DNA from: Dicyema japonicum
Lineage: Eukaryota; Animalia; Dicyemida
Assembly: GCA_011109175.1 (NCBI GenBank)
Contig: RDEW01000012.1
Coordinates: 773,222-826,522, forward strand
Length of the DNA: 53,301 nucleotides
Direction: 5' to 3'
Part shown: positions 2,358-49,090 of the stretch, in pieces
Layout of the letters: each line of letters starts with the position of its first letter
Position numbering within the stretch: position 1 is the first letter of the stretch
Made by a program: the position numbers and the translations under genes
Notes under the pieces: model-generated
What the model saw: only the letters and a program-made list of their open reading frames with translations
What the model was told of the DNA's origin: nothing
The model's database searches: none

Positions 2358-2509
2358 TTAAAGCTCACAAATGAATCGCTCCAACAGTTTCCTGACATAT
2401 GAGACCCCATTATTGACGACCTGGGTGACCTCATCTCCGTCGACAAAATTTTCAACCTCTTCCGAATCGACAAATTTGTTAGAAACGACTGACATATCCA
2501 CCACTTTCA
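2358..2509 (-). CDS. PNP: Purine nucleoside phosphorylase copy 1, last exon only (rest in N gap)
   Basis: [49 protein letters not shown], about 95% nt identical to the last exon of copy 2; retains Asn243. Confidence 0.9.
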
Positions 2510-3232
2510 NNNNNNNNNNNNNNNNNNNNNNNNNNNNNNNNNNNNNNNNNNNNNNNNNNNNNNNNNNNNNNNNNNNNNNNNNNNNNNNNNNNNNNNNNNN
2601 NNNNNNNNNNNNNNNNNNNNNNNNNNNNNNNNNNNNNNNNNNNNNNNNNNNNNNNNNNNNNNNNNNNNNNNNNNNNNNNNNNNNNNNNNNNNNNNNNNNN
2701 NNNNNNNNNNNNNNNNNNNNNNNNNNNNNNNNNNNNNNNNNNNNNNNNNNNNNNNNNNNNNNNNNNNNNNNNNNNNNNNNNNNNNNNNNNNNNNNNNNNN
2801 NNNNNNNNNNNNNNNNNNNNNNNNNNNNNNNNNNNNNNNNNNNNNNNNNNNNNNNNNNNNNNNNNNNNNNNNNNNNNNNNNNNNNNNNNNNNNNNNNNNN
2901 NNNNNNNNNNNNNNNNNNNNNNNNNNNNNNNNNNNNNNNNNNNNNNNNNNNNNNNNNNNNNNNNNNNNNNNNNNNNNNNNNNNNNNNNNNNNNNNNNNNN
3001 NNNNNNNNNNNNNNNNNNNNNNNNNNNNNNNNNNNNNNNNNNNNNNNNNNNNNNNNNNNNNNNNNNNNNNNNNNNNNNNNNNNNNNNNNNNNNNNNNNNN
3101 NNNNNNNNNNNNNNNNNNNNNNNNNNNNNNNNNNNNNNNNNNNNNNNNNNNNNNNNNNNNNNNNNNNNNNNNNNNNNNNNNNNNNNNNNNNNNNNNNNNN
3201 NNNNNNNNNNNNNNNNNNNNNNNNNNNNNNNN
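2510..3232. other. Assembly gap (723 N)
   Basis: Run of N; hides most of PNP copy 1. Confidence 1.
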
Positions 3233-9713: not shown

Positions 9714-10368
9714 AAGATTTTATTAAGGAAAGAAAAAAGAGTAAACGGTTATATAGCGGCTGCCCTGACTGCGTGGCTATTTCCTCTCAGGATGCGAGCG
9801 AGATTCACTCAAATAACCATCAGCGCTCACGAGGATCTCCTGTTCGTGTAGCGATCTGATTCCCTAGACGACTCAAGAATTCCATCGTCGCAGGCGCAAG
9901 GGAACTAGACATCTCAACGGCGAGTGATACAAACAAAAAATCCTTGGGTAGGACCGAGTACTTTTCCCGTTTCATCTTTGGCCTTCTCAGTGGCAGAACA
10001 GGCTCCAGAGGCACTCTGGAGTAAATTGCAAGAGGCAAACGTGTCGGTGCAGGTTACGTCTCAGACAAAAGGTTTCCCGGCTTCAAAAGGTAAGATTTTC
10101 ATCCCATCTTGTCGTTTCTCATTGCGACTGGGATTAGAAGTCTGTGTTCACATCCTACCGATGCGAAGACGAGATCGACTGTTTTGGCCTACACCCTCTC
10201 TCCTGCAGGAAGAGTGAAAACAGATTTCCCAGACACATGGCCTTGAACGAAGTCGTTAGGCGACCTTTGGACGCTGCCAGACACCCCTCCATGCTCAAAC
10301 CAGTCGGCCTTTGCAGGTGAGACGGGAAACGATCAGATGGGATGACAATCTTCCCTTTTGAAACCGGG
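9714..10368 (-). mobile_element. 5'-truncated CRE-like insertion with inverted 5' segment
   Basis: Minus 10118-9714 encodes the RLE and 3' end with AATAAA; plus 10117-10368 encodes the upstream knuckle-to-DGKRSDG segment; 15-bp TSD AACACTTTAAGTTAA at 9699-9713 and 10369-10383; same family as 24005-24790. Confidence 0.85.
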
Positions 10369-10731
10369 AACACTTTAAGTTAATCGAAATTAATACTTTT
10401 TATTTGTAATAAGCTTAATAAGAAATATGAAATTAAATCTAAAAATTGATGGCATTGATTGTAATAAAACCACAATGGAATGACTTTTTCGTGTATATTT
10501 CACTTGATAATCATATCACCTACTGAATGATTTTTGGGATCGTCCGCTTTGTTTGCTACCTCTCTATTAGCCACCAGTTTCTTTTTTAAGAGAAATGAGA
10601 TTGAATAAACTACACACACTTAAGCATTCCGACTAAAATTATTGAGGAATTTGAATGCGTGATATTATAACTCAAAAATATATTATCAAAGTAGAATTTT
10701 AATGACTAACTAATTATTATCGAGTACACAC

Positions 10732-10903
10732 CTCGAATTTGCCACGCCCATTTGAGAATTCAAAATTACAAAAATACCACAAACACAAAGATAGTTAATT
10801 CCGAAAATTATAAATTACTCGAATTTGCCACGCCCATTTGAAAATTCAAAATTACAAAAATACCACAAACTCAAAGATGGTTAATTCAGAAAATAATAAA
10901 TTA
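10732..10903. repeat. 86-bp tandem duplication just downstream of PNP copy 2
   Basis: CTCGAATTTGCCACGCCC at 10732 and 10818; single copy downstream of PNP copy 1. Confidence 0.85.
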
Positions 10904-10910
10904 AGTTAGT

Positions 10911-11876
10911 TTAAAGCTCACTAATGAATCGCTCCAACAGTTTCCTGACATATGAGACCCCATTATTGACGACCTGAGTGACCTCATCACCGTCGACAAA
11001 ATTTTCAGCCTCTTCCGAATCGACAAATTTGTTAGAAACGACTGACATAGCCACCACTTTTAGGCCAATATGAGCTCCACAAATAGCTTCTCCAGAAGTG
11101 CTCATTCCTAAATTCAGTGAAAGGACTAACCGACAGCATCACAGCCGTTCTTCAAAAGGAATCTCATATCAAAAATAGTTTCATAGTGGGGCCCTGCCAC
11201 CGAAGCATAGATCCCATGTCTAACGAAATCCATTCCCAAATGCTCCGCACATTTGAGCATTTTCTTACGAAGTTCTCTGTCGTATAAATTATATATAGGA
11301 GGAAATCTCTCCCCAAATCTGTAATCAGTCTACCGAACAATCACCTTTTTTCATTTGGACCCACCAGAGGACTATTCCCGGCAAAACCAGGAAAATATAT
11401 GTGATCTTTAATCACCATGATGTCTCCAAATGAATAGGACTGGTTAAGTCCTCCTGCAGCGTTGGTGAGAATTAAGGTTTTGACTCCCATGAGCTTCATC
11501 ATTCGAATTGGAGCCACAATCTATAGTTATGAGAATTTATTACTATTGATTGATCATGTCCTTCGTAGAAATGGTACCTCCCTTGCTGAACCATGACTTC
11601 TTTTCCACAAGGCAATCTTCCAAAGACAAACTGGCCAGCATGGGAAGTGACTGATTATTACTAATTCTTACCAGTTGTTTGAGGAAGGTTTGGAATATCA
11701 GAAAACTTGACAATTTCTTTATCGTTGATCACCTCATTAATTCCTCCGAGTCCAGTTCCACACACAATTCCTACTGTAGGTCTGATGGTCGTTTTTGATT
11801 GAACAAATTCAACCATTTCTTGAATATCTTCATAGACAATTTTTCTATATATTATCCCAAAGTCATACTTTGACAT
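10911..11876 (-). CDS. PNP: Purine nucleoside phosphorylase copy 2 (trimeric, mammalian-type), intact
   Basis: GT-AG introns at 11651-11671 (21 nt), 11521-11543 (23), 11319-11344 (26), 11108-11130 (23), plus a probable in-frame intron at 11845-11868 (24). The spliced ORF is open (290 aa, or 282 aa with the fifth intron). Motifs [37 protein letters not shown]. Confidence 0.96.
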
Positions 11877-17900: not shown

Positions 17901-18600
17901 TATGTTTTCAGGGACGAGATCCACAAGAGATCAGGTTGGTATCCTTTTGAGCAACTTTGAGGAGGGGAATATGTAGATTATCAGCAATGTGATTATCTCC
18001 AAATAGGCATCAAGTAGAAATGTGGAGAGTGTTGATTCGTTTGTGTTTGTAAAGAGGATACTGTCACGAATAAGTGAATAACCCCCACTTCCCATTTGTT
18101 CCATTAGGACGGTCCATGCGAATGGATGAGTATCCCTTGAATTGAGGAATACGACGTGGTGGTGGCAATCTGGTTTCATGTATTAATGCAATTTCCACGA
18201 AGAGGACAAAAATTCCATCAGAGATCCCGTAAATGCTTATTTGCAGAAATATTGTGTATTCAGATGAACCCGGGTTAAGTTCGACGTCTCCGGAGAAAGG
18301 AACGGACTCGTCAAAGGGGCTGANCCATTAGGACGGTCCATGCGAATGGATGAGTATCCCTTGAATTGAGGAATACGACGTGGTGGTGGCAATCTGGTTT
18401 CATGTATTAATGCAATTTCCACGAAGAGGACAAAAATTCCATCAGAGATCCCGTAAATGCTTATTTACAGAAATATTGTGTATTCAGATGAACCCGGGTT
18501 AAGTTCGACGTCTCCGGAGAAAGGAACGGACTCGTCAAAGGGGCTGAATGTCCCCTTGAAGACAGTCAAAGGGATCTCATTGAGGGGAAGATCCCATAGG
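14960..18600 (-). mobile_element. Ingi/Vingi-like LINE (2A-like motif, APE, RT, C-terminal domain), decayed and interrupted by a pogo element
   Basis: SGDVELNPGS at 18489-18518; IALIHETRL (APE); NGVPQGSS; KSSVTLFT; RRTLAQLRSGH. Confidence 0.8.
15870..16510 (-). mobile_element. pogo/Tigger-like transposon remnant (DDE_1 C-half)
   Basis: WDSFKAN...VAVIPGGVTSVVQPLDVSLNKPF and WIKQSWDDVS...SFKRCCISNALDG; subterminal TATAAGTCGA motif near 16450. Confidence 0.8.
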
Positions 18601-19274: not shown

Positions 19275-20240
19275 TTAAAGTTCGGAGATAAATTGTTCCA
19301 AAAGTTCTCTGATGTGGACGACCCTCTTATTGACGACTATTGGGACCTCATCCCCGTCGACAAAGTTTTCATACTCTTCCGAATCGACATACTTGTCGGA
19401 AATGACTGACATAGCCACCACCTTCAGTCCACCGTGAACTGCACAAATAGCCTCCCCGGCCGTGCTCATTCCTACACTCAACAAAAAACCAAACCGACGG
19501 CATCACAACCGTTCCTCAGCAAAAATTTCATCTCAAAGTTAGTCTCAAAGTGAGGTCCCGCAACAGAAGCATAGATCCCATGTCTAACGAAATCCATTCC
19601 CAATTGCTCGGCGCATTTGAGCATCTTCTTACGAAGTTCTTTGTCGTATAAATTATATATGGGAAGAAATCTCTCCCCAAATCTGTAATCAGTCTACCGA
19701 ACAATCACCTTTTGTCATTTGGACCCACCAGAGGACTATTCCCGGTAAAACCAGGGAAATATATGTGATCCTTGATCACCATGATGTCTCCCAATGAATA
19801 GGACTGGTTAAGCCCCCCTGCAGCGTTGGTGAGAATTAAGGTTTTGACTCCCATGAGCTTCATCATTCGAATTGGAGCCACAATCTATAGTTATGAGAAT
19901 TTATTACTATTGATTGATCATGTCCTTCGTAGAAATGGTACCTCCCTTGCTGAACCATGACTTCTTTTCCACAAGGCAATCTTCCAAAGACAAACTGGCC
20001 AGCATGGGAAGTGACTGATTATTACTAATTCTTACCAGTTGTTTGAGGAAGGTTTTGAATATCAGAAAACTTGATAATTACTTTATCGTTGATTATCTCA
20101 TTAATTTCTCCGAGTCCAGATCCACATACAATTCCAATTGTTGGCCTGATAGTTGTTATTGATCGTACAGAATCAACCATTTTTTGAATATCTTCATAGA
20201 CAATTTTTCTACACATTAACCCAAAATCATGCCCCGACAT
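19275..20240 (-). CDS. PNP: Purine nucleoside phosphorylase copy 3, intact, Asp at position 243
   Basis: Collinear with copy 2 with no indel (offset 8364). Introns 20015-20035, 19885-19907, 19683-19708, 19472-19494, plus a probable GC-AG intron at 20209-20232. Motifs [31 protein letters not shown]. Confidence 0.96.
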
Positions 20241-24004: not shown

Positions 24005-26600
24005 ATATATGTGCAAATGTGTCGGTGCAGGTAACGTCCCAGACAAGAGGTTTCCCGGCTTCAAAAGGGAAGATTGTCATCCCATCTGGTCGTTTCCCGT
24101 CCCGCCTGCAAAGACCGACAGGTTCGAGCATGGAGGAGTGTCCGGCGGCGTCCAAAGCTCGCCTAACGACTTAGTTCAAGGCCATTTTTTTCTGGGAAAT
24201 CTTCCTGCAGTAGAGAGGGTGTAAGCCAAAGCTGTCGATCTGGTCTCCGCATCGGGACGGATGTGGAACACATACTTTTAATCCCAGTCGAAATGAGATC
24301 CCAATTCGGACGCATTCATCATCCAGGACGGTGCCCAGAACTCCATTGGGAATGGCGTTGAGAAGACGCCCCCCGACAACAAACAGACACGGGAATGATG
24401 ACACTAGCAAATCTTTGAAAAAATTCCACCATATAGCATCGTCCAGCCCCGCTGAGAGAACCAGGAAGGAAGGGAAAACTGATCAGTGCGGCTCCAGGCC
24501 TCACGAGCATGGTCGGCGTCCTTGTCAATAGAGAATTCAGCTAGAGAGTGTAGAATCCTCTTTACATGTGAGTTACAGGCCACTAGCGATAATAGGTATG
24601 AAGGGAGAGAAAAGTCCACAGGGTTCCGAATTCCAAATCTTCCGAGTCTCACTGGCAGCGTGGCTTGCTTCCATGAGTAATCCTCGAACCGGAAGTTAAA
24701 GATACGTTCCGCTGTCGTATGGAAGATCATACAGGGTTAAATAGGGAGCAGTCTTCAGGACGAATACAAGCCTTTGTATGTTGTTACTGTTTTTCAGGAG
24801 GAATAATGCTGTATGAATGTCAAATAGACACAAGCGGTTCATATTCTTTCCGAGTAACAGTAGTTTCACTCGTCACTCGGTTTGACGAGTGACACCGTCA
24901 TCAGTGGATACTCACTGCGGAACTGGATTTTCTAGAAAGGACTCAAACACAAGAAAAAGAAGTGAAGATCATTCTTTGGTTCTACGATTAGTTAGAATTA
25001 ACTATTCTTTATTTAAATAAAGTGTGTGTCCTGCCTATGCGGAGCTATAAATATTATGGCTCTCGTGAAAAGGCTGTTATTATTATTAACAGTCGTTTTT
25101 TACGTATAGCTCTTCCCATTGCATTTATGGTGATTGGGGATCCGAGGAATATAAGTTTTTCATCGGGAGTGGAAATACTTCCAGGCAGTAAATTTCCGAA
25201 ACATGACAAAGCTTTTGAATACTTCTCTTCTGAAAGTCCGCAACTGTAGATTTCGCATTTAGTGTAATTTAATTCCAGTCCTGCTTCCAACAGTGCTGGA
25301 ATTATCACTTCCAAATCCCAGAAAATAGTATCCGGGGGTCCTCCGAGGACCGCATCAACCAGATGCCATATGTTGATGGGCGAGCACAGAGGTTTGGTGA
25401 TTTTCTCTATTGCAAGACAAACAATAGGAGTCCAAGGAGATCTCCCTGCTGGACTCCAAAATAGGAATGGATTAAGTAGTCCACGAAAAGTAAGGATGAA
25501 GGTAGGCTGTATGACTGATTCACAAATTCGAAAATATTAGGACATCTCTCAACACACGCCTCCAGGATATTGTCTCTCCTTAGACTATTGAAGGCAAACT
25601 TAATGTCCAGTTTTACCAGGACATGTCTCCGGGAATCTTCTATACTGCGGTTTATGAATGTCCTTACTGAATGGACAGCGGCCTCGCATCCCAAGCGAAT
25701 ACCGACGCCTACTTGAGGGGGATTCAATAATTTTGTAACGAGTGGAATATAATGTCTGGAAGCGACTTTAGCAGCCAGTCTTCTGAAGACAAACTCGACC
25801 GCAACTAGTCGCACTCCGCTTTCCTTCTTATCAAAGGCTATCAAATTGGCTGAGAACAGGATATAGCGGATAACTTCGGGAAGAATTCGAGACATGATCC
25901 GATTCATAAGTGAAATAATTGAATTCGTTAGGCGAAGTCATGGTTTCCTACGGACAAAGAGGTTAGATCCTTCAGGTAGCCAGGTCTCATTCCGTCGAGC
26001 CCGCCACTGCTACTAGGGACAAAATTACGACTTGCGAGGAGAACTTCATCGTTTGATGCAATCAGAGGACTCACTCCGGATGGGGGAACGACTTGACGTA
26101 CGTTTTGGGGTGCCAGTGGATGCTTGTTCAGTAAAATATTGTAGGCGTCTAGAGTCGGTTTTCGTCGTCCAGTCAAGGAAAGTGCCCTGATGGCTGCGCG
26201 GGTGCCACCTTGGATTAACTTCAACCGGACAGTTCTCTTGAGACGGATCACTTAGACTTTCTCGTTATGACCACGTATCTCCCTCGTGCGGTTAGAAGCC
26301 ATGGGACAACTTGGGATGTAAATACCTCCCAAAAAAGGCGTGGGAAACCTCCCCAAATAGGCTGAGACATGGCTGGCAGTGCCATACTCCAAACACGCTC
26401 GCTGTGGCTTGGTATGACTTGATACACCCGAGGTGGAAGAAATCTCCACAAGCAAAGCAGGAAATCCCACGCTTCCGAGTTCTGACAAGCCGACAGGACG
26501 AACACATCTCAATTGACTTGGCTGGTACCTTTTCTTCGAAGTGCGAACATTCTTTTCAGGTGCTTTTCTCACAACAGGCATAATCACAACAACGAACTTC
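24005..26600 (-). mobile_element. Near-full-length CRE-like RLE retrotransposon with N-terminal PHD finger (decayed, split by a SINE)
   Basis: PHD C4HC3 at 26367-26504; SSGGLDGMRP; VKLDIKFAFNS; GVQQGD; FLGSPI; WKQATLPVRLG; zinc knuckle; DGKRPDG...WDVTC RLE. Reads on continuously across the SINE. Confidence 0.9.
24867..25086 (+). mobile_element. 5'-truncated SINE copy
   Basis: Homologous to about 44195-44450; TSD TAACAGT(A/C)GTTT at 24855-24866 and 25087-25098; (TTA)n tail. Confidence 0.7.
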
Positions 26601-27049
26601 CATGCTAAAGAACAGAAAAATCTTTAAAAAAGCAATATATAGTGAGTTTATAAGAAAGATGGGAAATCGCATCCAATCATGTACTGCGTTAGTCCGGAGG
26701 ACATATAATGAGTTTATAAGAAAGATGGGAAATCATTATAACTCATATGTCCTTATCGAATCATCATATAAAACATTCAAGTTCATCTTTAATGTATGCC
26801 ATGATCCGAAATTGGCAATATTATGTTACTTTCCGGATTGACCAAAATGTTTCAAAATGGCCACTAAAGAAAGTACAAGCAACGCTTAAGAAAAACGTGT
26901 ATTAAAAAACTTATATTCCACTAAAGAAAGTACAAGCAAGATTTAAATATTAAATCAAATAATTTATTAAAATAATTAATATTTTTACTAATTCATTCAT
27001 TTTTGGTTCAATAAAATTAAATTAATCTCATTCCTTAGGAAAACTCTAG

Positions 27050-27650
27050 CCAATGCTGCGTTATATAAACTGAAGAATTTATGGCTCAATCAAAATGGCA
27101 TCGACACGAAAATGAGAATCCTATTATACGACTCATTCATAAAACCCGTACTTTTATATAACGCTAGAACTTGGGCGACCTTATCAGCGGATATGGAAAA
27201 ACTAGACTCGTTCCACAGAGGTCAGCTGAGAAAAATAACAGGAAATACTTGGCCTGCGAGAATATCGAGGAACGCTTTATACAAGAGATGCAGCACTAGA
27301 CCTATCAGCTGAGAAGTACTGGAATCCCGATGGAGGCTCTTCGGACACGTGCTGAGGATGGAATTACATCCCCACCGAACATATCTATGGAAACATACTA
27401 TGTTAGTCAAGAAGGCCGCTATCGTGGAAGACCAAGAACAACACTGCCAATAGTCTTACAAAAAGACCTGGTCAAAATCAAAAAAAAATCTAATAAATGC
27501 CGACGACCTGGACAGCATGAGAGCCTTAGCTATGAACAGGGGAGCATGGAAAAGGATGACATCTAACCTTGTTTCTTTTGCTGCACATGCAGCAATTGGA
27601 TCTCGTGAAGTGCTTATAATTAATATGGCTCTCGTGAAGTGCTTAAATAC
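27050..27650 (+). mobile_element. RTE-like LINE 3' fragment
   Basis: YDSFIKPVLLYNARTW; FHRGQLRKI; RWRLFGHVLRM; RGRPRTTLP. Confidence 0.8.
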
Positions 27651-27759
27651 TAATCTCATTCCTTGAAATTTCAACAGAGGAGGATTATGTTTAAAGAGAT
27701 ATGAACAAGTTGATAAAATTATATACTAAAATTTCACACAAAGAGCACATGAAGTCTGA

Positions 27760-29075
27760 TACACTACCATCACTTAGGAAACTAGAGACTATCAGAACCA
27801 CTCTTTTTTCGGAGAGAGGTGAGGGATACAATACATTTCGCAAAAACGACATACTCTCGTGGACCAGACAACATTCCTGTTACTTTATTAAAAAATCTTC
27901 GAGACAGGGGAGTCATTTTTCTAACGTCGATTTTCAACTACTCGATTAACCAGAATGTGATACCATTATTATGGAAACAGGCACTAATACGGCCAATACT
28001 AAAACCAAAAAGACTGAGAGATGACCCAGCATTTTTTGACCAGTGTCACTACTATGTTCCATGTCAAAAATCCTGGAGAGGCTTGTGCTCGGGAGAATAA
28101 GAGGCTTTTTCAAAATGGATTCAAAAATGAGAGATCCACATTTACATAACTAAAAACATTCACCGACTTTATTCGAGTCGAATTCACAACCAAGCCGAGA
28201 CACTTTAAGACAATGCTCTGCTCGATTGACATACATAAAGCTTTTGACTCAGTCTCGAGGAAGATTTTATCGAGAAAAATATTTCAATCGGAGATCCCAG
28301 GGAAGCTAAAGTTTTTGATCACCAACTTCCTAAGGAAACGTGTTTGCCTCGGAGGTCTGAAATTAATCTCACGGCTCCTCCTCAACGGAGTCCCTCAAGG
28401 ATCTGTTTTATCCCCTGCTATTTTTAACCTCTTTCTGGCTGATCTCCCGAATCTTGAATTAATTAATGATGTTCTACTTTCTTATGCGGATGATATTGTG
28501 TTGGCTTCGCGAGATCAGGACATCCAGAAGGCCACAGAGAGAATACAAATTAATCTTGACTGGCTTAATGCCTGGATTATGAAAAACCGGCTCGTGGTGA
28601 ATGCAGAAAAGTCGTCTACGTTACTATTTACTTCTGACAAAAAATTGGGAAGAAACACAGTCACCTTGAAGTTAAACAAGGTCGGCATCCCTTTCAACAG
28701 ATGTCAAAGGATCTTGGTTGTGACAATTGATATGCATCTCTTATAACACCTCACGTAGAAAACATTCTATTGAAATGCGAAAAGAAACTGAACGTATTGA
28801 ATAGTTTATCAGGAATATGGAAGAATGGTACTCACCCAGTCTTGATGAACGTGTACAGACAGTACATCGAGCCATGTTTCTCATATGCATGTATAAGACT
28901 AGACTCCAGATCACGGGAAAGTGGCCCTGAAAATTCAGGCAGCCGTCCTGTACGTTCATGCGCGGGCACGAACGAGGAACATCAGGAAAAGATGAGGTCT
29001 CTGTTAGAATGCATCGCGATCACGTGATAATTAGTTTGGTTTTACCGTGGTCTTGGGTTAAAAATAAAATAAATC
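27760..29075 (+). mobile_element. Ingi/Vingi-like LINE RT fragment
   Basis: IDIHKAFDSV; NGVPQGSVLSPAIFNLF; SYADD; YRQYIEPCFSYA. Confidence 0.8.
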
Positions 29076-29229
29076 TCATTTCCTTGGTCTTTGGAATAAT
29101 TTTAATTTAATTTATCTCATTCGACAAGGATGCTACAGACTTAGAACTGGATGTTCATGAAATGCCTTTACAGATTTGGGATTCCGGAGGCTTTGGAGAA
29201 AAGTCTTTTCCAGAAATCCACTTTTCCAT

Positions 29230-30920
29230 AATTTTGAATTTTTTTCTAATTAGCTTCTTTTTGTGAAGATAGGTTGAGGTGTTGACGTACCTCTCTTGCA
29301 CAAGATCTCTTTTTCATGCATTCAATCTTCCTTGTTCACCATTGGATCATCCAATGTGAGAGGACTAGCATCATACGTAAAACGACAACACTTATGTGCG
29401 GACCTCCAACGATATGGAATATCTGTATGCTGTCTCCAGGAAACTAAAGTCTCCAATGGTCTGGATGAAACAATGAACGGGCATCGACTGCTCCTGTTGC
29501 CGTCAGACTGCCGACATTATGGGATGGGGTTCGCTATACGCGTGGACACAGCTGTGATGGATCATAGAGCATGGAGTATCAACGACAGGATTGCCATCCT
29601 CCAACTACGCCTCGGAAACAACCGTAATACTACTCTGTCGATTATCAATGTATGTGCACCCACCACAGTTAGGGTATCCGTTAAAACAGAGGAACTTGAC
29701 AATTTCTACTCGTCTTTATCATCGGATTACTCTTCCGTGTCAAGCTCCTTCATACTTTTTATAGCGGGAGACTGGAATTCAAAAGTGGGGGAAAAGCGGG
29801 AAGAATCAAATTGCTTGGCCAGCCACTCTCGAGGGATCAGAAATCTGTCCGGGGAGACCCTTATACACTTCTACGAGTCATTTAAACTGTTCCTTTGAAA
29901 CACGGGTTTCCGACATGCAGCGAGACATGTTACGACGTGGACAGGGCAGAGGAGAGACTCCTGTGATATTCGCGTCAATATATTTAACCAAATCGAAAAC
30001 ACAGAGGAGGATACTCACGGACTCCTGTACGTACAATGGCATAATGACCTCGAATGATCACAGGCTACTATAAAGCGTATCATTCTAAAGCGACGCTTTG
30101 GAATCGACGGAGCACTGGTAGCTCGTACGCGGAGCAGGACCTTGGCTCTGGAGGCTCTACGTGCTTCCGACAATACCCGTAAAAATACGGCGATAAAATA
30201 TCGACCTGTTGGAAATGTCGACACGAATATGTCACCCGGGCTGCTATAGAAGAATATTTCTATCAGAGTCAGTCTGGCAGCTGGAAATCGTCCAGGAGGT
30301 TCAAGGGAACTTTTGACAAAAAAATAGAACTGTCAAAAAACCAAAGTAAATTCAAACTTTTAATCGAGTCGTCAAACTCGACAAGTCTCACTGACTCTTT
30401 TAAACGAGAACGTAACTGAATCAAATAAAAATAAAGAGAAGATTAAGGGAGCTAACTTGGCATACACTGGATAACTTGAAACATGGTGCAAGAATGTTTG
30501 CTGCGGTTAAACAATTATCCCGCAATACCGGAAAGAATCACAGTCCTTGATGATACAGGAAAAGTAATAATCAACGGACAGGAATCAGCAAATAAAATTG
30601 CCGCTTTCTACAATAGCGACTATATCTCAATGAACACATTTGGAATTGTTCGAAGGAATTCCCAGAGACTTGAATCAGAGTATCACGCATTACGGAGTCG
30701 TTTCAGCCTTGGGTAAGCTCAAGAATGGCAGAGCCCCTGGACTGGACAACGTGAATGCAGAATTATTGAAATATGCGCCAGACAGGGTGGCTGAGTTAAT
30801 CTGCACAGTCCTGAACAGAACGTACAAATGTCACAGTCCATTTGATGCGGGAATGGCACTTTGATCCCAATTCACAAACCTGGAAAGGAAAGAGGCAATC
30901 TAAACAGCCTACGCCCGATT
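29230..30920 (+). mobile_element. RTE-like LINE, APE domain to start of RT
   Basis: SNVRGL, CCLQETK, AGDWNSKVG, NQI; LKNGRAPGLDNVNAELLKY; LRPIT. Confidence 0.8.
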
Positions 30921-30929
30921 ACAATAATT

Positions 30930-33770
30930 TTTATTTATTTATTAAAACCAAAAATCATCGACAAATAAATAACTACATAGCCGTCAGGTGATTCCGGCAG
31001 CCTCGACTAGCCATCTCATTTTTGCTCGGTGTTCCTCCCGAGTTCCAACGCATTTCCGGATTGGGCGGGGGTTTCTGACTTTTTAAGGCGTAGTAGGGCT
31101 CCGGATTTCCTCACTAATTTCTCAAATGGTATAGGGTTTAGAGGTGTCTCGGAAAATTTTTGCAGAGCCTTACTTGCCATTTTTTGGAATGTATTGATTT
31201 TTTCCATATTCTCGTTTGATAGGTTGGCTCCCCATAGCACACCCGTATGTTAAAGACGGTTGAATATACTGCACGTAGAGCGAGTCCAAGTTTGAGTTGA
31301 AACACCACTTATATTGTCCAAGGAGTGTTTTAACAAAATTTAGCTTTTGTTGTGCCGAGATGACGTTGTCGATATGTTTGCTGAAGGTCAAAAGTGAGTC
31401 GTAAGTTACGCCCAGTATCTTGACCGAGTTGGTCACGGGGATTGAGTTTCCATTTATGGTCACACATAGAGCGGAGTTTGTTAATCTTCTGTTTGTTGTG
31501 AAAATTGTTGTATAAGACTTTTCGAGTCCTGTATGTAGAATGTTCTTAACGAGCCAACAGTTCAGATCGTCCAATGTAGCTTGTATCCGGTATACAGCAG
31601 TATGAACCCACTGATCTTTGACTGCGACGATTATATCATCTGCATATGTCAGAACCAGAGTATCGTCACTGGTAAGGGAGGGCATATCATTTAGGAATAG
31701 GTTGAACAGGTGTGCTGACAGTGGAGATCCTTGAGGGACCCCATTTGGAAACAACTTGGTCATTGACCTAGTTTTTCGAGTAGTTACTATTCCTCCTCTT
31801 CCATTTAGGAAATTAGCAATCCAGATTTTCAGGTTGTTTGGGATTTTTGACGTAAAGATTTTTTTTATCAAAAGCTTTCTTGTCAAAAGTGTCGAAAGCT
31901 TTTTCTATATCGATGGAGCATAACAATGACTTCTGATGAGATTTGCGTTTTAGGCTATCCTTGAGAAATTTGTAAGGCATGTAAGATGCGTTTCTGTGGA
32001 GTTCCCTTTTCTGAATCCGTGTTGAAAAAGTGCATCAGGAAGGTATGGTTTGATTAGTTCAAGAATCAGCTTTTCCAAAAGTTTTGATGTAACACATAGG
32101 AGAGATATTGGTCTGTATGAAACTGGTGATCCCTTTGGTCTCCCAGGTTTTAGAATAGGTCCTATGTTTGATATCTTCCATATGGAATAAATACAATTTT
32201 CGATAATTGAAAAGTTGAAAATTTTGATGAGGGCTATGTTTTTCAGAACTATTGCAGGGATTACGTCTGGACCGCAGTAATAAGTCGAATTTTGACCCTT
32301 AACCATCTTCTGCACGTTCTCCACATAGAGGACAACCGGTTAGGTAGTTTTTTTAGGTGTGAGAGCTAGGATGAATGGACCTTTGAATTTCTTGTGAGGG
32401 ATGAAACTCGTGGAGGAGTAGTACTTCATAAGTTTGTTTAGGAAGATCTTGTTATCCATTTCTTCACGTGCGGCAGGGTTGTCAGCGGTAATAAAGCTTC
32501 TAAGTGTTTTCCACATTTTTGTAAAGGAGTTCTGCTTGTTTAGATTGGACCTGAGGTTTTTCCAAACTTTCTCTTGTTTCTTTGCATTGTTCCTGATCTC
32601 TCTTTCTAATGTACGAATTCTCAATCTTGTTTCCCAGGATTGTTTTTGGAGGCTTTTTAGGTAATTTCTTTCTTTTATGAGTGGATCGGCTGTGGAAGAA
32701 GGCATCTTTCTTGAGATCAGTGGCCTTCTTTTAATACAAATTTTCATTCCCGCGCGTACCACTCTTAAAAAATAGTGTAGTGCTTTATCGATGTTGAAAT
32801 TGGATAAATGAAAGTCAAGTAGATAATAGTCGACAAAATTTGAGAACTTTTCCCTGTCGACATTTTTGTAGTCGGTAAATAAAACAGGTTTCTTTACAAT
32901 CGACACTCTTCCTTCAAACGTAATCATAACGAGATTATGGTCATTGCTGGTCTCGTATAGCACTGTCCATTTAGTTAATGTTGCGATGTTTGGTGAGGCA
33001 AGAGTGAGATCGGGGTCCTGTCATTCGCTCTGTAGGGAAAATAGGGCTGTTTAATATTACCATGTCATCCAGATTTGAGAAAAATTGGTTTCCTCTGACA
33101 TCGCATGGTTGGTTCTTGAACCATGTCGAATGCTTTGCGTTTAGGTTTTTGATTTGTCGACTTCTGACAGGGAGAAACTGAATTCCTTGGGGTGTGAGTT
33201 AGGTGGAGGTACATACACATTCAATATGTTTGTGTTTCCGATACTTGTTATAACTGAAATACCAGTATATTCGACGGGAGACATGAGGTTGACAAAAGTT
33301 TCGTTTGCGTACGGAATTTCTTTTTTGATAAGGGTAAGAAGTCCATCACCCCGCCCAGCTGGGCGGTCACGCCTGATGACGTGATAGATTGGGAAGACGG
33401 AAGTGGAAGAAGACGGAGTTAGTCTTGTTTCTTGGAGTAGGCAAATGTCAGTATTATACTTTTTTAATAGGTTTCTGATTTGGAGGATTTTCCCCTTCAC
33501 TCCATTTATGTTTAGTTGAATCAAAAAAGGGGTTTTGGAGGTCCAGGATTAGGGTTTACATCGCCGGAAAGCATTAGGTGGGCTTCCATCAAGACAGGAG
33601 AGAGAGGCCAGTGGGGCGACCGTCCAAGAAGAACATTCCTCTTGGATTGGACGTAGTGCATGGTTCTTTTGTTTGGGATATATAGTCCACAATTTACGTT
33701 ACCAAAAACGGCGAACCACATGACGAAGATATTAAGCCCAATGAATAAGGAAAATATTCTCCCTTGTTGT
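30930..33770 (-). mobile_element. Ingi/Vingi-like LINE, nearly full ORF (2A-like motif, APE, RT), frameshifted
   Basis: LMLSGDVNPNPGP; LNINGVKGK...LLQETRL; YRPISLL; NGVPQGSPLS; TYADD; ILGVTYD. Confidence 0.88.
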
Positions 33771-47597: not shown

Positions 47598-49090
47598 CAC
47601 TCCTCGACAAAAAAAATGATTCAAATTCAATTTTGCCTTTTTCTTTGAAATTTGATGAATATAATAATTTCGAAAAACTTAGTAGATTAGTTATGATCAA
47701 TATTATTTAATTTTAATAAAATATTAGATAATTACAGACATTTTAAAGAATTAAAAGCATGACATACAATATGTTAGTGACAAAAAAAATGATTCAAAAT
47801 TAAAGCCTTTGTAATTAATATCTTGTATGTCCTCCTTTTGCCATAAAAATTTCCCAACATCGTTTTTTCATGGATAGAATAAGTTTTTCAATATAATGTT
47901 TAGGAATATTTCCCCAAATATGAAGAAGTTCCTGCTTTAATTCGTCAACATTTTTCAAGTCGATTTTACGGAGTTCCGCTTTCATATGAGCCCATAAATG
48001 CTCAATTGGATTTAGATCAGGTGACTGGGATGGCCAGTCTAGTGTTTTTATATTTTCTTTATCAAAATAATTCATGATTAACTTCGCTGTATGACACGGT
48101 GCATTATCCTGTTGAAAAACGAAGTCATCAAGTCCCATTTTTGCAACTGATCTCGGTAGCCTGTTGACTAAAAGGTTTAAATATTTCGCAGAATTCAATG
48201 TTCCGTCAACAAAAACCAATTCTCCAACGCCGTTAAAAGAAAACATCCCCATACCATGATTTTCCCTATTTTTTGTTTAATAAAATTTAAATCCAAATCA
48301 ACCTGTTCCAAAATTCACTGTTGTTAAAATATTTTTGGAATTAAGTTGTTCACTGCTTTTCCTATAAACTATTTTTCGTTAATTGTTTGGAATCACGTGA
48401 AAAATGCATTCATCCGAGAAAATTGTGCTTTTCCATTTTTCATCAGATATGGTAAGAAATCTTTTCGTTATTTCTAATCTTTTTTCAGTGTGTCTTATAT
48501 TCAAAAATGGCTTAATTTTGCGATACGTCCAAATATACCATTTTCGTTAAGATTTTTTATAATTGTTCTTGAGGAAATTGTTTTATTTGTTAGTTTCGTC
48601 ATTTCATTTGAGATCTTTTTCGATGTTTTTGTTGGATTTTCTTCGGAATACTTTATTAATTCTTTCAAATCATTTTCGTGAACTACATATTTCAGCAAGA
48701 CAATGCCCCATGTCATACTTCCAATGCAACAATGGAATATTTTTCTGCAAATAAAATTAATTTACTCGATTGGCCGACACAATCTCCGGACATGAATCCA
48801 ATTGAACACATTTGGGCTAAAATAAAATATGAATTATCGAAGGAAAATATAGAAAATCGACCAAAAAATAGAGAACAACAAAAAAATAAAATACTCGAAA
48901 TTTGGAATCAAATTACAATGGACTATATTAAAAAATTGATAAATTCGATGAAAAATCGTAGTTTAGAATTATTCAAATCAAAAGGAAAACATATCCCGTA
49001 CTAATATTTTATTTTTTTGACTTTTGTCCGGAATTTTTTGTCATAAAAGATTGTTTTCTGCTTTAATCTCAACTTTTTTGTCGAGGGGTG
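47598..49090. mobile_element. Hybrid Tc1 element made of two divergent transposase 3' halves
   Basis: 17-bp TIRs CAC(T/C)CCTCGACAAAAAA, TA on both sides; minus transposase about 48680-47815 (FSDE, QQDNAPCH, SPDLNPIE); plus half 48678-49004 (QQDNAPCH, SPDMNPIE). Confidence 0.9.

Follow-up and report, generated by a model that had tools for sequence, protein, structure and literature searches.

In trimeric PNPs, the textbook case of a single residue that sets purine specificity is the Asn243-to-Asp switch, most of what is known about it coming so far from mutagenesis. In the canonical PNP, O6/N7 of hypoxanthine or guanine would receive a hydrogen bond from the carboxamide of Asn243; with a carboxylate at position 243, a bond would instead be accepted from N6 of adenine, and N7 would be protonated, as is the case for MTAP and hexameric PNPs. 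For human PNP, two reports cite an increase of about 5000-fold in the kcat for adenosine upon Asn243Asp replacement (PMC6128611, PMC5074518). The N256D derivative of K. lactis PNP works best on adenosine, at a kcat/KM of 2.2e6, above that for inosine, the inosine efficiency being down tenfold (PMC5074518). The converse replacement, D204N in the adenosine phosphorylase of B. cereus, moves the preference to inosine, as cited in the same report (PMC5074518). Our literature searches turned up no description of a eukaryotic PNP of the trimeric type in which Asp occurs naturally at the 243 site, and neither the D. japonicum genome paper with its supplements nor the Dicyema sp. paper contains anything on purine salvage or PNP.

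We show here that one of three tandem PNP genes of the dicyemid Dicyema japonicum, a parasite of octopus, has Asp at this site and that the same residue is present in the PNP of a second dicyemid. On balance, we consider it probable, as far as sequence comparison can tell, that this gene (copy 3) represents, in D. japonicum, an Asp243 form of the trimeric (low-molecular-mass) PNP which exists throughout the dicyemids, and that its product should phosphorolyse adenosine.

The PNP array and its codon 243

The window, i.e. the whole stretch of 53,301 nt that was analysed, contains three loci of the trimeric PNP type in tandem, all on the minus strand; a tblastn search of the window with the spliced copy 3 protein returned exactly these three. 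Among database proteins, the closest is UniProt B9ZYX1 (BAH29734.1), a 'nucleoside phosphorylase' from D. japonicum; copy 2 is 97% identical to it and the window is therefore D. japonicum DNA. Copy 3 (Asp243 type, 19275..20240) and copy 2 (Asn243 type, 10911..11876) are complete and have the same exon-intron structure. Copy 1 (2361..2509; tblastn match at 2361-2507) is a 3' fragment limited to the last 49 codons, the remainder being lost in the abutting assembly gap (Ns at 2510-3232). Around the array, ORF fragments for the reverse transcriptase and endonuclease (Exo_endo_phos) of non-LTR retrotransposons are found at 25407-31886, 18064-18422 and 47812-49043, and a 223-bp tandem duplicate lies nearby, at 18101-18547.

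As worked out from the sequence, copy 3 has exons at 20240-20233, 20208-20036, 20014-19908, 19884-19709, 19682-19495 and 19471-19275 (stop included), separated by introns of 24, 21, 23, 26 and 23 nt. Ultra-short introns are known in dicyemids. The PNP introns in the window (21-26 nt) all have GT-AG ends, save the first one of copy 3 (20209-20232; GCATGA...TAG), which has a GC donor where its copy 2 equivalent has GT. This additional 24-nt in-frame intron, situated after codon 3, is revealed by the N-terminus of B9ZYX1; if left unspliced in copy 3, it would add 8 in-frame residues near the N-terminus (290-aa alternative). When it is removed, as in B9ZYX1, the proteins of copies 2 and 3 each have 282 aa and the Asp is residue 243. 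The number given to it in the preliminary description is therefore correct; our numbering coincides with that of human PNP from residue 187 on and equals the human number plus 1 between about 75 and 186. The spliced coding sequence of copy 3 is open over its 282 codons, as initially claimed, and all its splice sites are usable. B9ZYX1 has family, length (282 aa) and intron positions in common with the D. japonicum copies and is of the Asn243 type; the Asp243 paralogue is absent from the database proteins covered by the homologue search.

The bases at codon 243 were read directly at the three loci, and the GAC versus AAC difference noted at the outset is there. In the SVISDKY segment of copy 3, the plus strand has GTC at 19395-19397, so that the minus-strand codon is GAC (Asp); the plus strand has GTT at 2478-2480 in copy 1 and at 11031-11033 in copy 2, i.e. 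AAC (Asn), within SVVSNKF. In HMMER alignments, the Asp of copy 3 falls on Asn243 of human PNP and on Asn245 of S. mansoni PNP2. Logan contigs from runs X2 and X3, which come from a single sample, span 19346-19463 and agree with the window throughout, and at codon 243 these two runs gave no report of another base at 10% or more; the sample is possibly the assembly's own source, so this check of the base in reads rules out a consensus error and does not imply independence. A sequencing error at GAC was rejected on the ground that the Logan contigs carry GAC, in two haplotypes. A minor read contig, of roughly one quarter the depth, retains Asp243 and shows three changes, all non-synonymous (G231C, V240I and E250K in the 282-aa numbering); it represents either a second haplotype or an additional Asp-type copy. 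A Lys-to-Glu read variant at 19845 matches B9ZYX1. There may be PNP copies or alleles beyond those present in the assembly.

Four runs were found in the run searches, their kind being unstated and none being flagged as RNA. In three of them (X1-X3), introns are present in the Logan contigs, and X2 and X3 are free of splice joints; these runs are therefore most likely DNA. Run X5, from a different sample, gave a contig with a loose end at 20015, the 12 letters of which are the end of the upstream exon: this is a spliced exon-exon junction, which falls within the stretch where copies 2 and 3 are identical. The X5 contigs spanning 20045-20157 have 1-2 differences from copy 3, where copy 2 would give 7-11. 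The Asp exon is without coverage in this run, and the whole amounts to a hint, no more, that copy 3 is transcribed.

Asp243 among animals and in a second dicyemid

The distribution of residues at column 243 was drawn from a one-profile alignment of the 259 animal PNP domains that cover it (vertebrates, arthropods, an echinoderm, a cnidarian and others, with copy 3 and the second dicyemid included): Asn is found in 255 and Asp in 4. The four with Asp are copy 3, the second dicyemid, Callosobruchus analis CAI5848494.1 and a 215-aa metagenome protein. The C. analis domain (residues 128-395) belongs to a gene model in which tandem PNP repeats are fused, and has kept His257 alongside Asp; its closest relatives, from C. 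maculatus and Acanthoscelides, have Asn. The gene for the 215-aa protein, at 1094-1741 of locus L002, comes from a set of AT-rich metagenome scaffolds (27% GC, sample SAMEA6872858). Natural Asp variants do exist in animals, but they are sporadic. Since about a third of the codons of the Asp exon differ between copies 2 and 3, a single-codon difference between them is unremarkable; what is non-random is the composition of the column and the presence of Asp, again, in the second dicyemid.

The second-closest protein in the databases is annotated as a low-quality 'Octopus sinensis' PNP and is encoded on the 1.03-Mb contig VCDQ01002408.1 of GCA_006345805.1. The gene has introns of 23-32 nt, read through in the octopus annotation ('LOW QUALITY PROTEIN'), and in a tree it forms with the D. 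japonicum copies a 100/100 clade, far from the molluscs and other animals. From the ultra-short introns and this clade, VCDQ01002408.1 appears to be DNA of another, distant dicyemid living in the sequenced octopus; the contig is a probable case of parasite contamination of a host genome assembly. The region retained (VCDQ01002408.1 694037-714799, hereafter L001) carries the PNP gene at 10001-10954, with no further PNP within 10 kb on either side and with retrotransposon-type elements in its flanks similar to those of the window. By tblastx, the only matches between L001 and the window are PNP and transposon-like sequence. The last exon of copy 3, used as a homologue query, gave no candidates and no exon-sized fragments from other dicyemids.

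Once spliced, the second dicyemid PNP is 282 aa long and has Asp243 (GAT, L001 10832-10834) within STISDVY, as well as Phe200 and Tyr245. It is 64% identical to copy 3 at the amino acid level; with respect to the D. japonicum copies, its synonymous sites are saturated and dN is 0.26. The Asp type therefore predates D. japonicum, and the description of copy 3 as newly evolved is contradicted, the same Asp243, F200 and Y245 being found at such a divergence. It may also be that the D. japonicum orthologue of the second dicyemid gene is a fourth gene, not seen here.

The two species differ in their introns as well. The 26-nt intron between GPNDKR and FGERF (19683-19708 in copy 3, 11319-11344 in copy 2) is identical in copies 2 and 3 and absent from the second dicyemid (L001 10530-10550), and the first intron is 32 nt in the latter versus 24 nt in D. 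japonicum. Since the intron between GPNDKR and FGERF exists in one species only, ultra-short introns turn over, by presence or absence, between dicyemids.

Constraint, gene conversion and history of the two types

The proteins of copies 2 and 3 are 85% identical and the overall dN/dS between the two genes is 0.24, with marked variation along the sequence: dS is 0.25 and dN/dS 0.50 for the 5' exon, 0.08 and 0.16 for the middle part, 0.62 and 0.10 for the second-last exon, and 0.89 and 0.20 for the last exon. With an overall ratio of about 0.2, it is concluded that both the Asp and the Asn types are under purifying selection. That the Asp/Asn difference is functionally unimportant, or that copy 3 is silent or decaying in an array which would be a mere gene-dosage amplification, is accordingly very improbable. 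A few features go in that direction, namely the GC donor of the first intron, the three non-synonymous changes within 118 bp on the minor haplotype, the 3' exon that is without copy-specific RNA support and the repeats and retrotransposons that surround the array. They have to be set against an intact 282-codon ORF with usable splice sites throughout and a dN/dS of 0.2, against an Asp conserved in a second species across saturated synonymous divergence, and against the X5 contigs, which are copy-3-like over the 5' exon (1-2 differences versus 7-11 for copy 2) and come from a run that also shows a spliced junction. Copy 3 was also considered as a pseudogene, and this was rejected in view of its open 282-codon ORF and of its dN/dS of about 0.2.

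Copy 3 (19817..20055) and copy 2 (11453-11691) have in common a 239-bp run of perfect identity, two introns included. None of 20,000 permutations reached 239 bp, the longest run being 41 bp on the average and 105 bp at most. By contrast, the 3' exons, with residues 200-245, are 25-35% divergent between the two copies. The identical run therefore reflects gene conversion between the Asp and Asn types, which has not erased the 3' exons. Copies 1 and 2 differ by a dS of 0.06 and have their 3' flanks in common, copy 3 sharing the gene body only; copies 1 and 2 are a recent duplicate.

Conversion complicates the reading of the trees. The full-length tree, which is biased by the conversion tract, has the topology (second dicyemid,(copy 3,(copy 2,B9ZYX1))) with a support of 89/80. 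When residues 156-282 are used, copy 3 pairs with the second dicyemid, weakly (81/60) and without rejection of the alternatives (AU p 0.34 and 0.12); with the short N-terminal part, it is copy 2 that pairs with the second dicyemid instead. At the level of individual residues, copy 3 and the second dicyemid have in common, versus copy 2, F200, N203, E205, A232, V233, I241, D243 and Y245, which are grouped around the base pocket. In the last exon, the divergence between copies 2 and 3 is about half that of either copy from the second dicyemid.

From these data, and given both the rarity of Asn-to-Asp changes and the last-exon divergences, three histories can be weighed. The one that comes first, although it falls slightly short of being probable, is that Asp is ancestral in dicyemids and that the Asn copies of D. 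japonicum arose by duplication and reversal; along this route, tandem duplication would have been followed by the Asp-to-Asn reversal and by pocket changes (Y200, F245 and others) in the Asn copies. A quite possible second one is that of an old Asp/Asn pair partly homogenised by gene conversion, which would have spared the 3' specificity exons. The third, in which Asn changed to Asp twice in parallel, is unlikely.

A more specific version of the third history has Asn as the ancestral state, copy 3 gaining both Asp and its adenosine activity after a recent tandem duplication within D. japonicum, and the Asp of the other dicyemid being a parallel event. All outgroup animal PNPs do have Asn, the full-length tree does join copies 2 and 3 to the exclusion of the second dicyemid (89/80), and under that topology two parallel gains require as many steps as a gain and a reversal; the last-exon divergence of copies 2 and 3, at about half that to the second dicyemid, is also in keeping with it. 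Nevertheless, we hold it to be rather improbable. The change is rare (two other cases in about 255 animal domains) and two gains in one small clade are for that reason unlikely; besides Asp243 itself, copy 3 and the second dicyemid have seven residues (F200, N203, E205, A232, V233, I241 and Y245) in common as against copy 2; and the conversion tract exaggerates the full-length grouping, whereas the unconverted C-terminal part joins copy 3 to the second dicyemid.

Active site, predicted activity and known enzymes

For the full-length family and PDB searches, B9ZYX1, the Asn paralogue, was used as a proxy for copy 3. It scores 155 bits with PF01048, 277 bits with NF006054 (cut-off 218) and 266 bits with TIGR01697 (cut-off 197), falls under the TIGR01700 equivalog cut-off (265 versus 293 bits) and reaches only 65 bits with the MTAP model TIGR01694, whose cut-off is 275. 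Against human PNP in the PDB, its E value is 4e-73. Copy 3 itself was scanned through its four larger exons (those other than the first exon, of 8 nt, and the exon of 36 aa): for each, the top model is of the PNP family and not MTAP, for which the scores are also lower. Copy 3 can be firmly assigned, from these profile scores, to the trimeric PNP subfamily (TIGR01697, PNPH-PUNA-XAPA) of the NP-I phosphorylase superfamily, and not to MTAP.

Most of the active site is conserved. H64, R84, H86, Y88, N115, A116, A117, G118, F159, E201, V217, G218, M219 and S220 are found in all dicyemid copies, which confirms for copy 3 the retention of R84, H86, E201, M219 and S220 announced in the preliminary description. 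By aligned position, copy 3 has all the phosphate and ribose ligands Ser33, His64, Arg84, His86, Tyr88, Ala116, Ser220, Met219 and Phe159, position 33 being Thr in copy 2 and in the second dicyemid. The pocket differences likewise stand: position 200 is Phe in copy 3 and the second dicyemid versus Tyr in copy 2, and position 245 is Tyr in the former two versus Phe in copy 2. Position 242 is Ser throughout the dicyemid copies. Position 243 sorts them into Asp (copy 3 and the second dicyemid) and Asn (copies 1 and 2), and position 257 is Gly in all D. japonicum copies (window 19430-19432 in copy 3, and equivalents) and Val in the second dicyemid. Of the features of a 6-oxopurine-specific PNP (EC 2.4.2.1), Asn243 is lacking in copy 3 and in the second dicyemid, and His257 in all copies.

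His257 is the ligand of the ribose 5'-OH in mammalian PNP. Its loss in dicyemid PNPs might loosen the recognition of the 5' position. The Asp type could act mainly on 5'-modified adenosines such as 5'-methylthioadenosine (MTA), and the combination of Asp243 with the loss of His257 would allow it to replace MTAP in a reduced genome. In line with this are the Gly or Val present at position 257 in the two species and the fact that, among PDB sequences, the best-scoring one for B9ZYX1 is a human PNP chain, 2a0w, which has Gly at 257. MTAP also has Asp at the equivalent base-contact site, the MTAP of S. mansoni has adenosine phosphorylase activity as well (PMC5147791), and D. japonicum has only 5,012 genes and thinned metabolic pathways (PMC6736024). 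We regard this as unlikely all the same: the Asn copies are without His257 too, so that the Asp type is not alone in having lost it, and the models place the gene in the PNP family, far under the MTAP cut-offs (65 versus 275 bits).

To return to adenosine as the expected substrate of copy 3, the prediction relies on the gain of 6-aminopurine activity by the human and K. lactis enzymes upon Asn-to-Asp replacement, and on the conservation of Glu201 and of the phosphate and ribose ligands; that engineered N243D confers adenosine phosphorolysis had been put forward from the start and is borne out by these two mutants (PMC6128611, PMC5074518). Copy 3 would convert adenosine, probably alongside inosine, into adenine and ribose-1-phosphate, and copies 1 and 2, with Asn243, would be its partners of the 6-oxopurine type in the tandem array. 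Most likely, by analogy with the mutants, copy 3 has a broad or adenosine-preferring phosphorolytic activity and copies 1 and 2 are 6-oxopurine enzymes; the substrate preferences, the split of roles between the copies and the direction of the change are all deduced from sequence. The dicyemid pocket, with Ser242 and no His257, is not that in which N243D was assayed. Copies 1 and 2 need not be inactive on adenosine, since SmPNP2 shows adenosine activity while retaining Asn. Adenosine cleavage had initially been presented as a salvage route that animals normally lack, which is overstated: S. mansoni cleaves adenosine by both MTAP and PNP2 (PMC5147791, PMC6128611).

Tentatively, these elements may be assembled as follows. 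Dicyemids might have swapped an Asn243 PNP for an Asp243, His257-less enzyme salvaging adenosine, perhaps MTA, from cephalopod urine; in D. japonicum, tandem duplication with Asp-to-Asn reversal might then have brought back a 6-oxopurine enzyme, gene conversion homogenising the catalytic core while being excluded from the specificity exons. If true, nature would have replayed a classic engineered specificity switch, and would have done so in both directions. The Asp243 switch is here natural in an animal and conserved in two species, with Asn paralogues adjoining it in one of them, which makes the PNP array a natural experiment on the evolution of specificity after duplication and on its survival under gene conversion. 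Copy 3 may also point to adenosine-to-adenine salvage in an animal whose genome is among the most reduced in metazoans. No medical use of an Asp243 PNP is obvious, and the drug-target value suggested earlier is moot, D. japonicum being a cephalopod kidney symbiont.

The closest counterparts of copy 3 are the engineered human PNP mutants N243D and E201Q:N243D and the K. lactis mutant N256D, which have in common with it a trimeric scaffold and the Asn-to-Asp change and which gain efficient adenosine phosphorolysis; like the single mutants, copy 3 retains Glu201 (PMC6128611, PMC5074518, PMC2799393). It differs from them in that its Asp is natural, present in two species and maintained under purifying selection, in that its pocket has Ser242, Tyr245 and no His257, and in that its activity is a prediction only. 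MTAP, the hexameric PNP of E. coli and B. cereus AdoP (Asp204) have Asp at the equivalent site and accept 6-aminopurine nucleosides (PMC5147791, PMC5074518). MTAP and the hexameric enzymes, however, belong to other subfamilies, copy 3 and its paralogue being far under the MTAP cut-offs and well over the PNP ones. SmPNP2 (PDB 5CXS) gives the best PDB match to the last exon of copy 3; it occurs naturally as a second PNP paralogue in a spiralian parasite and has an altered nucleoside selectivity (adenosine, inosine and cytidine; PMC6128611). It keeps Asn245 and owes its selectivity to neighbouring substitutions, whereas the dicyemid enzyme alters the Asn itself. To conclude, the Asp243 PNP is best seen, by analogy with these enzymes, as a natural, conserved and probably adenosine-accepting variant of a well-known enzyme.
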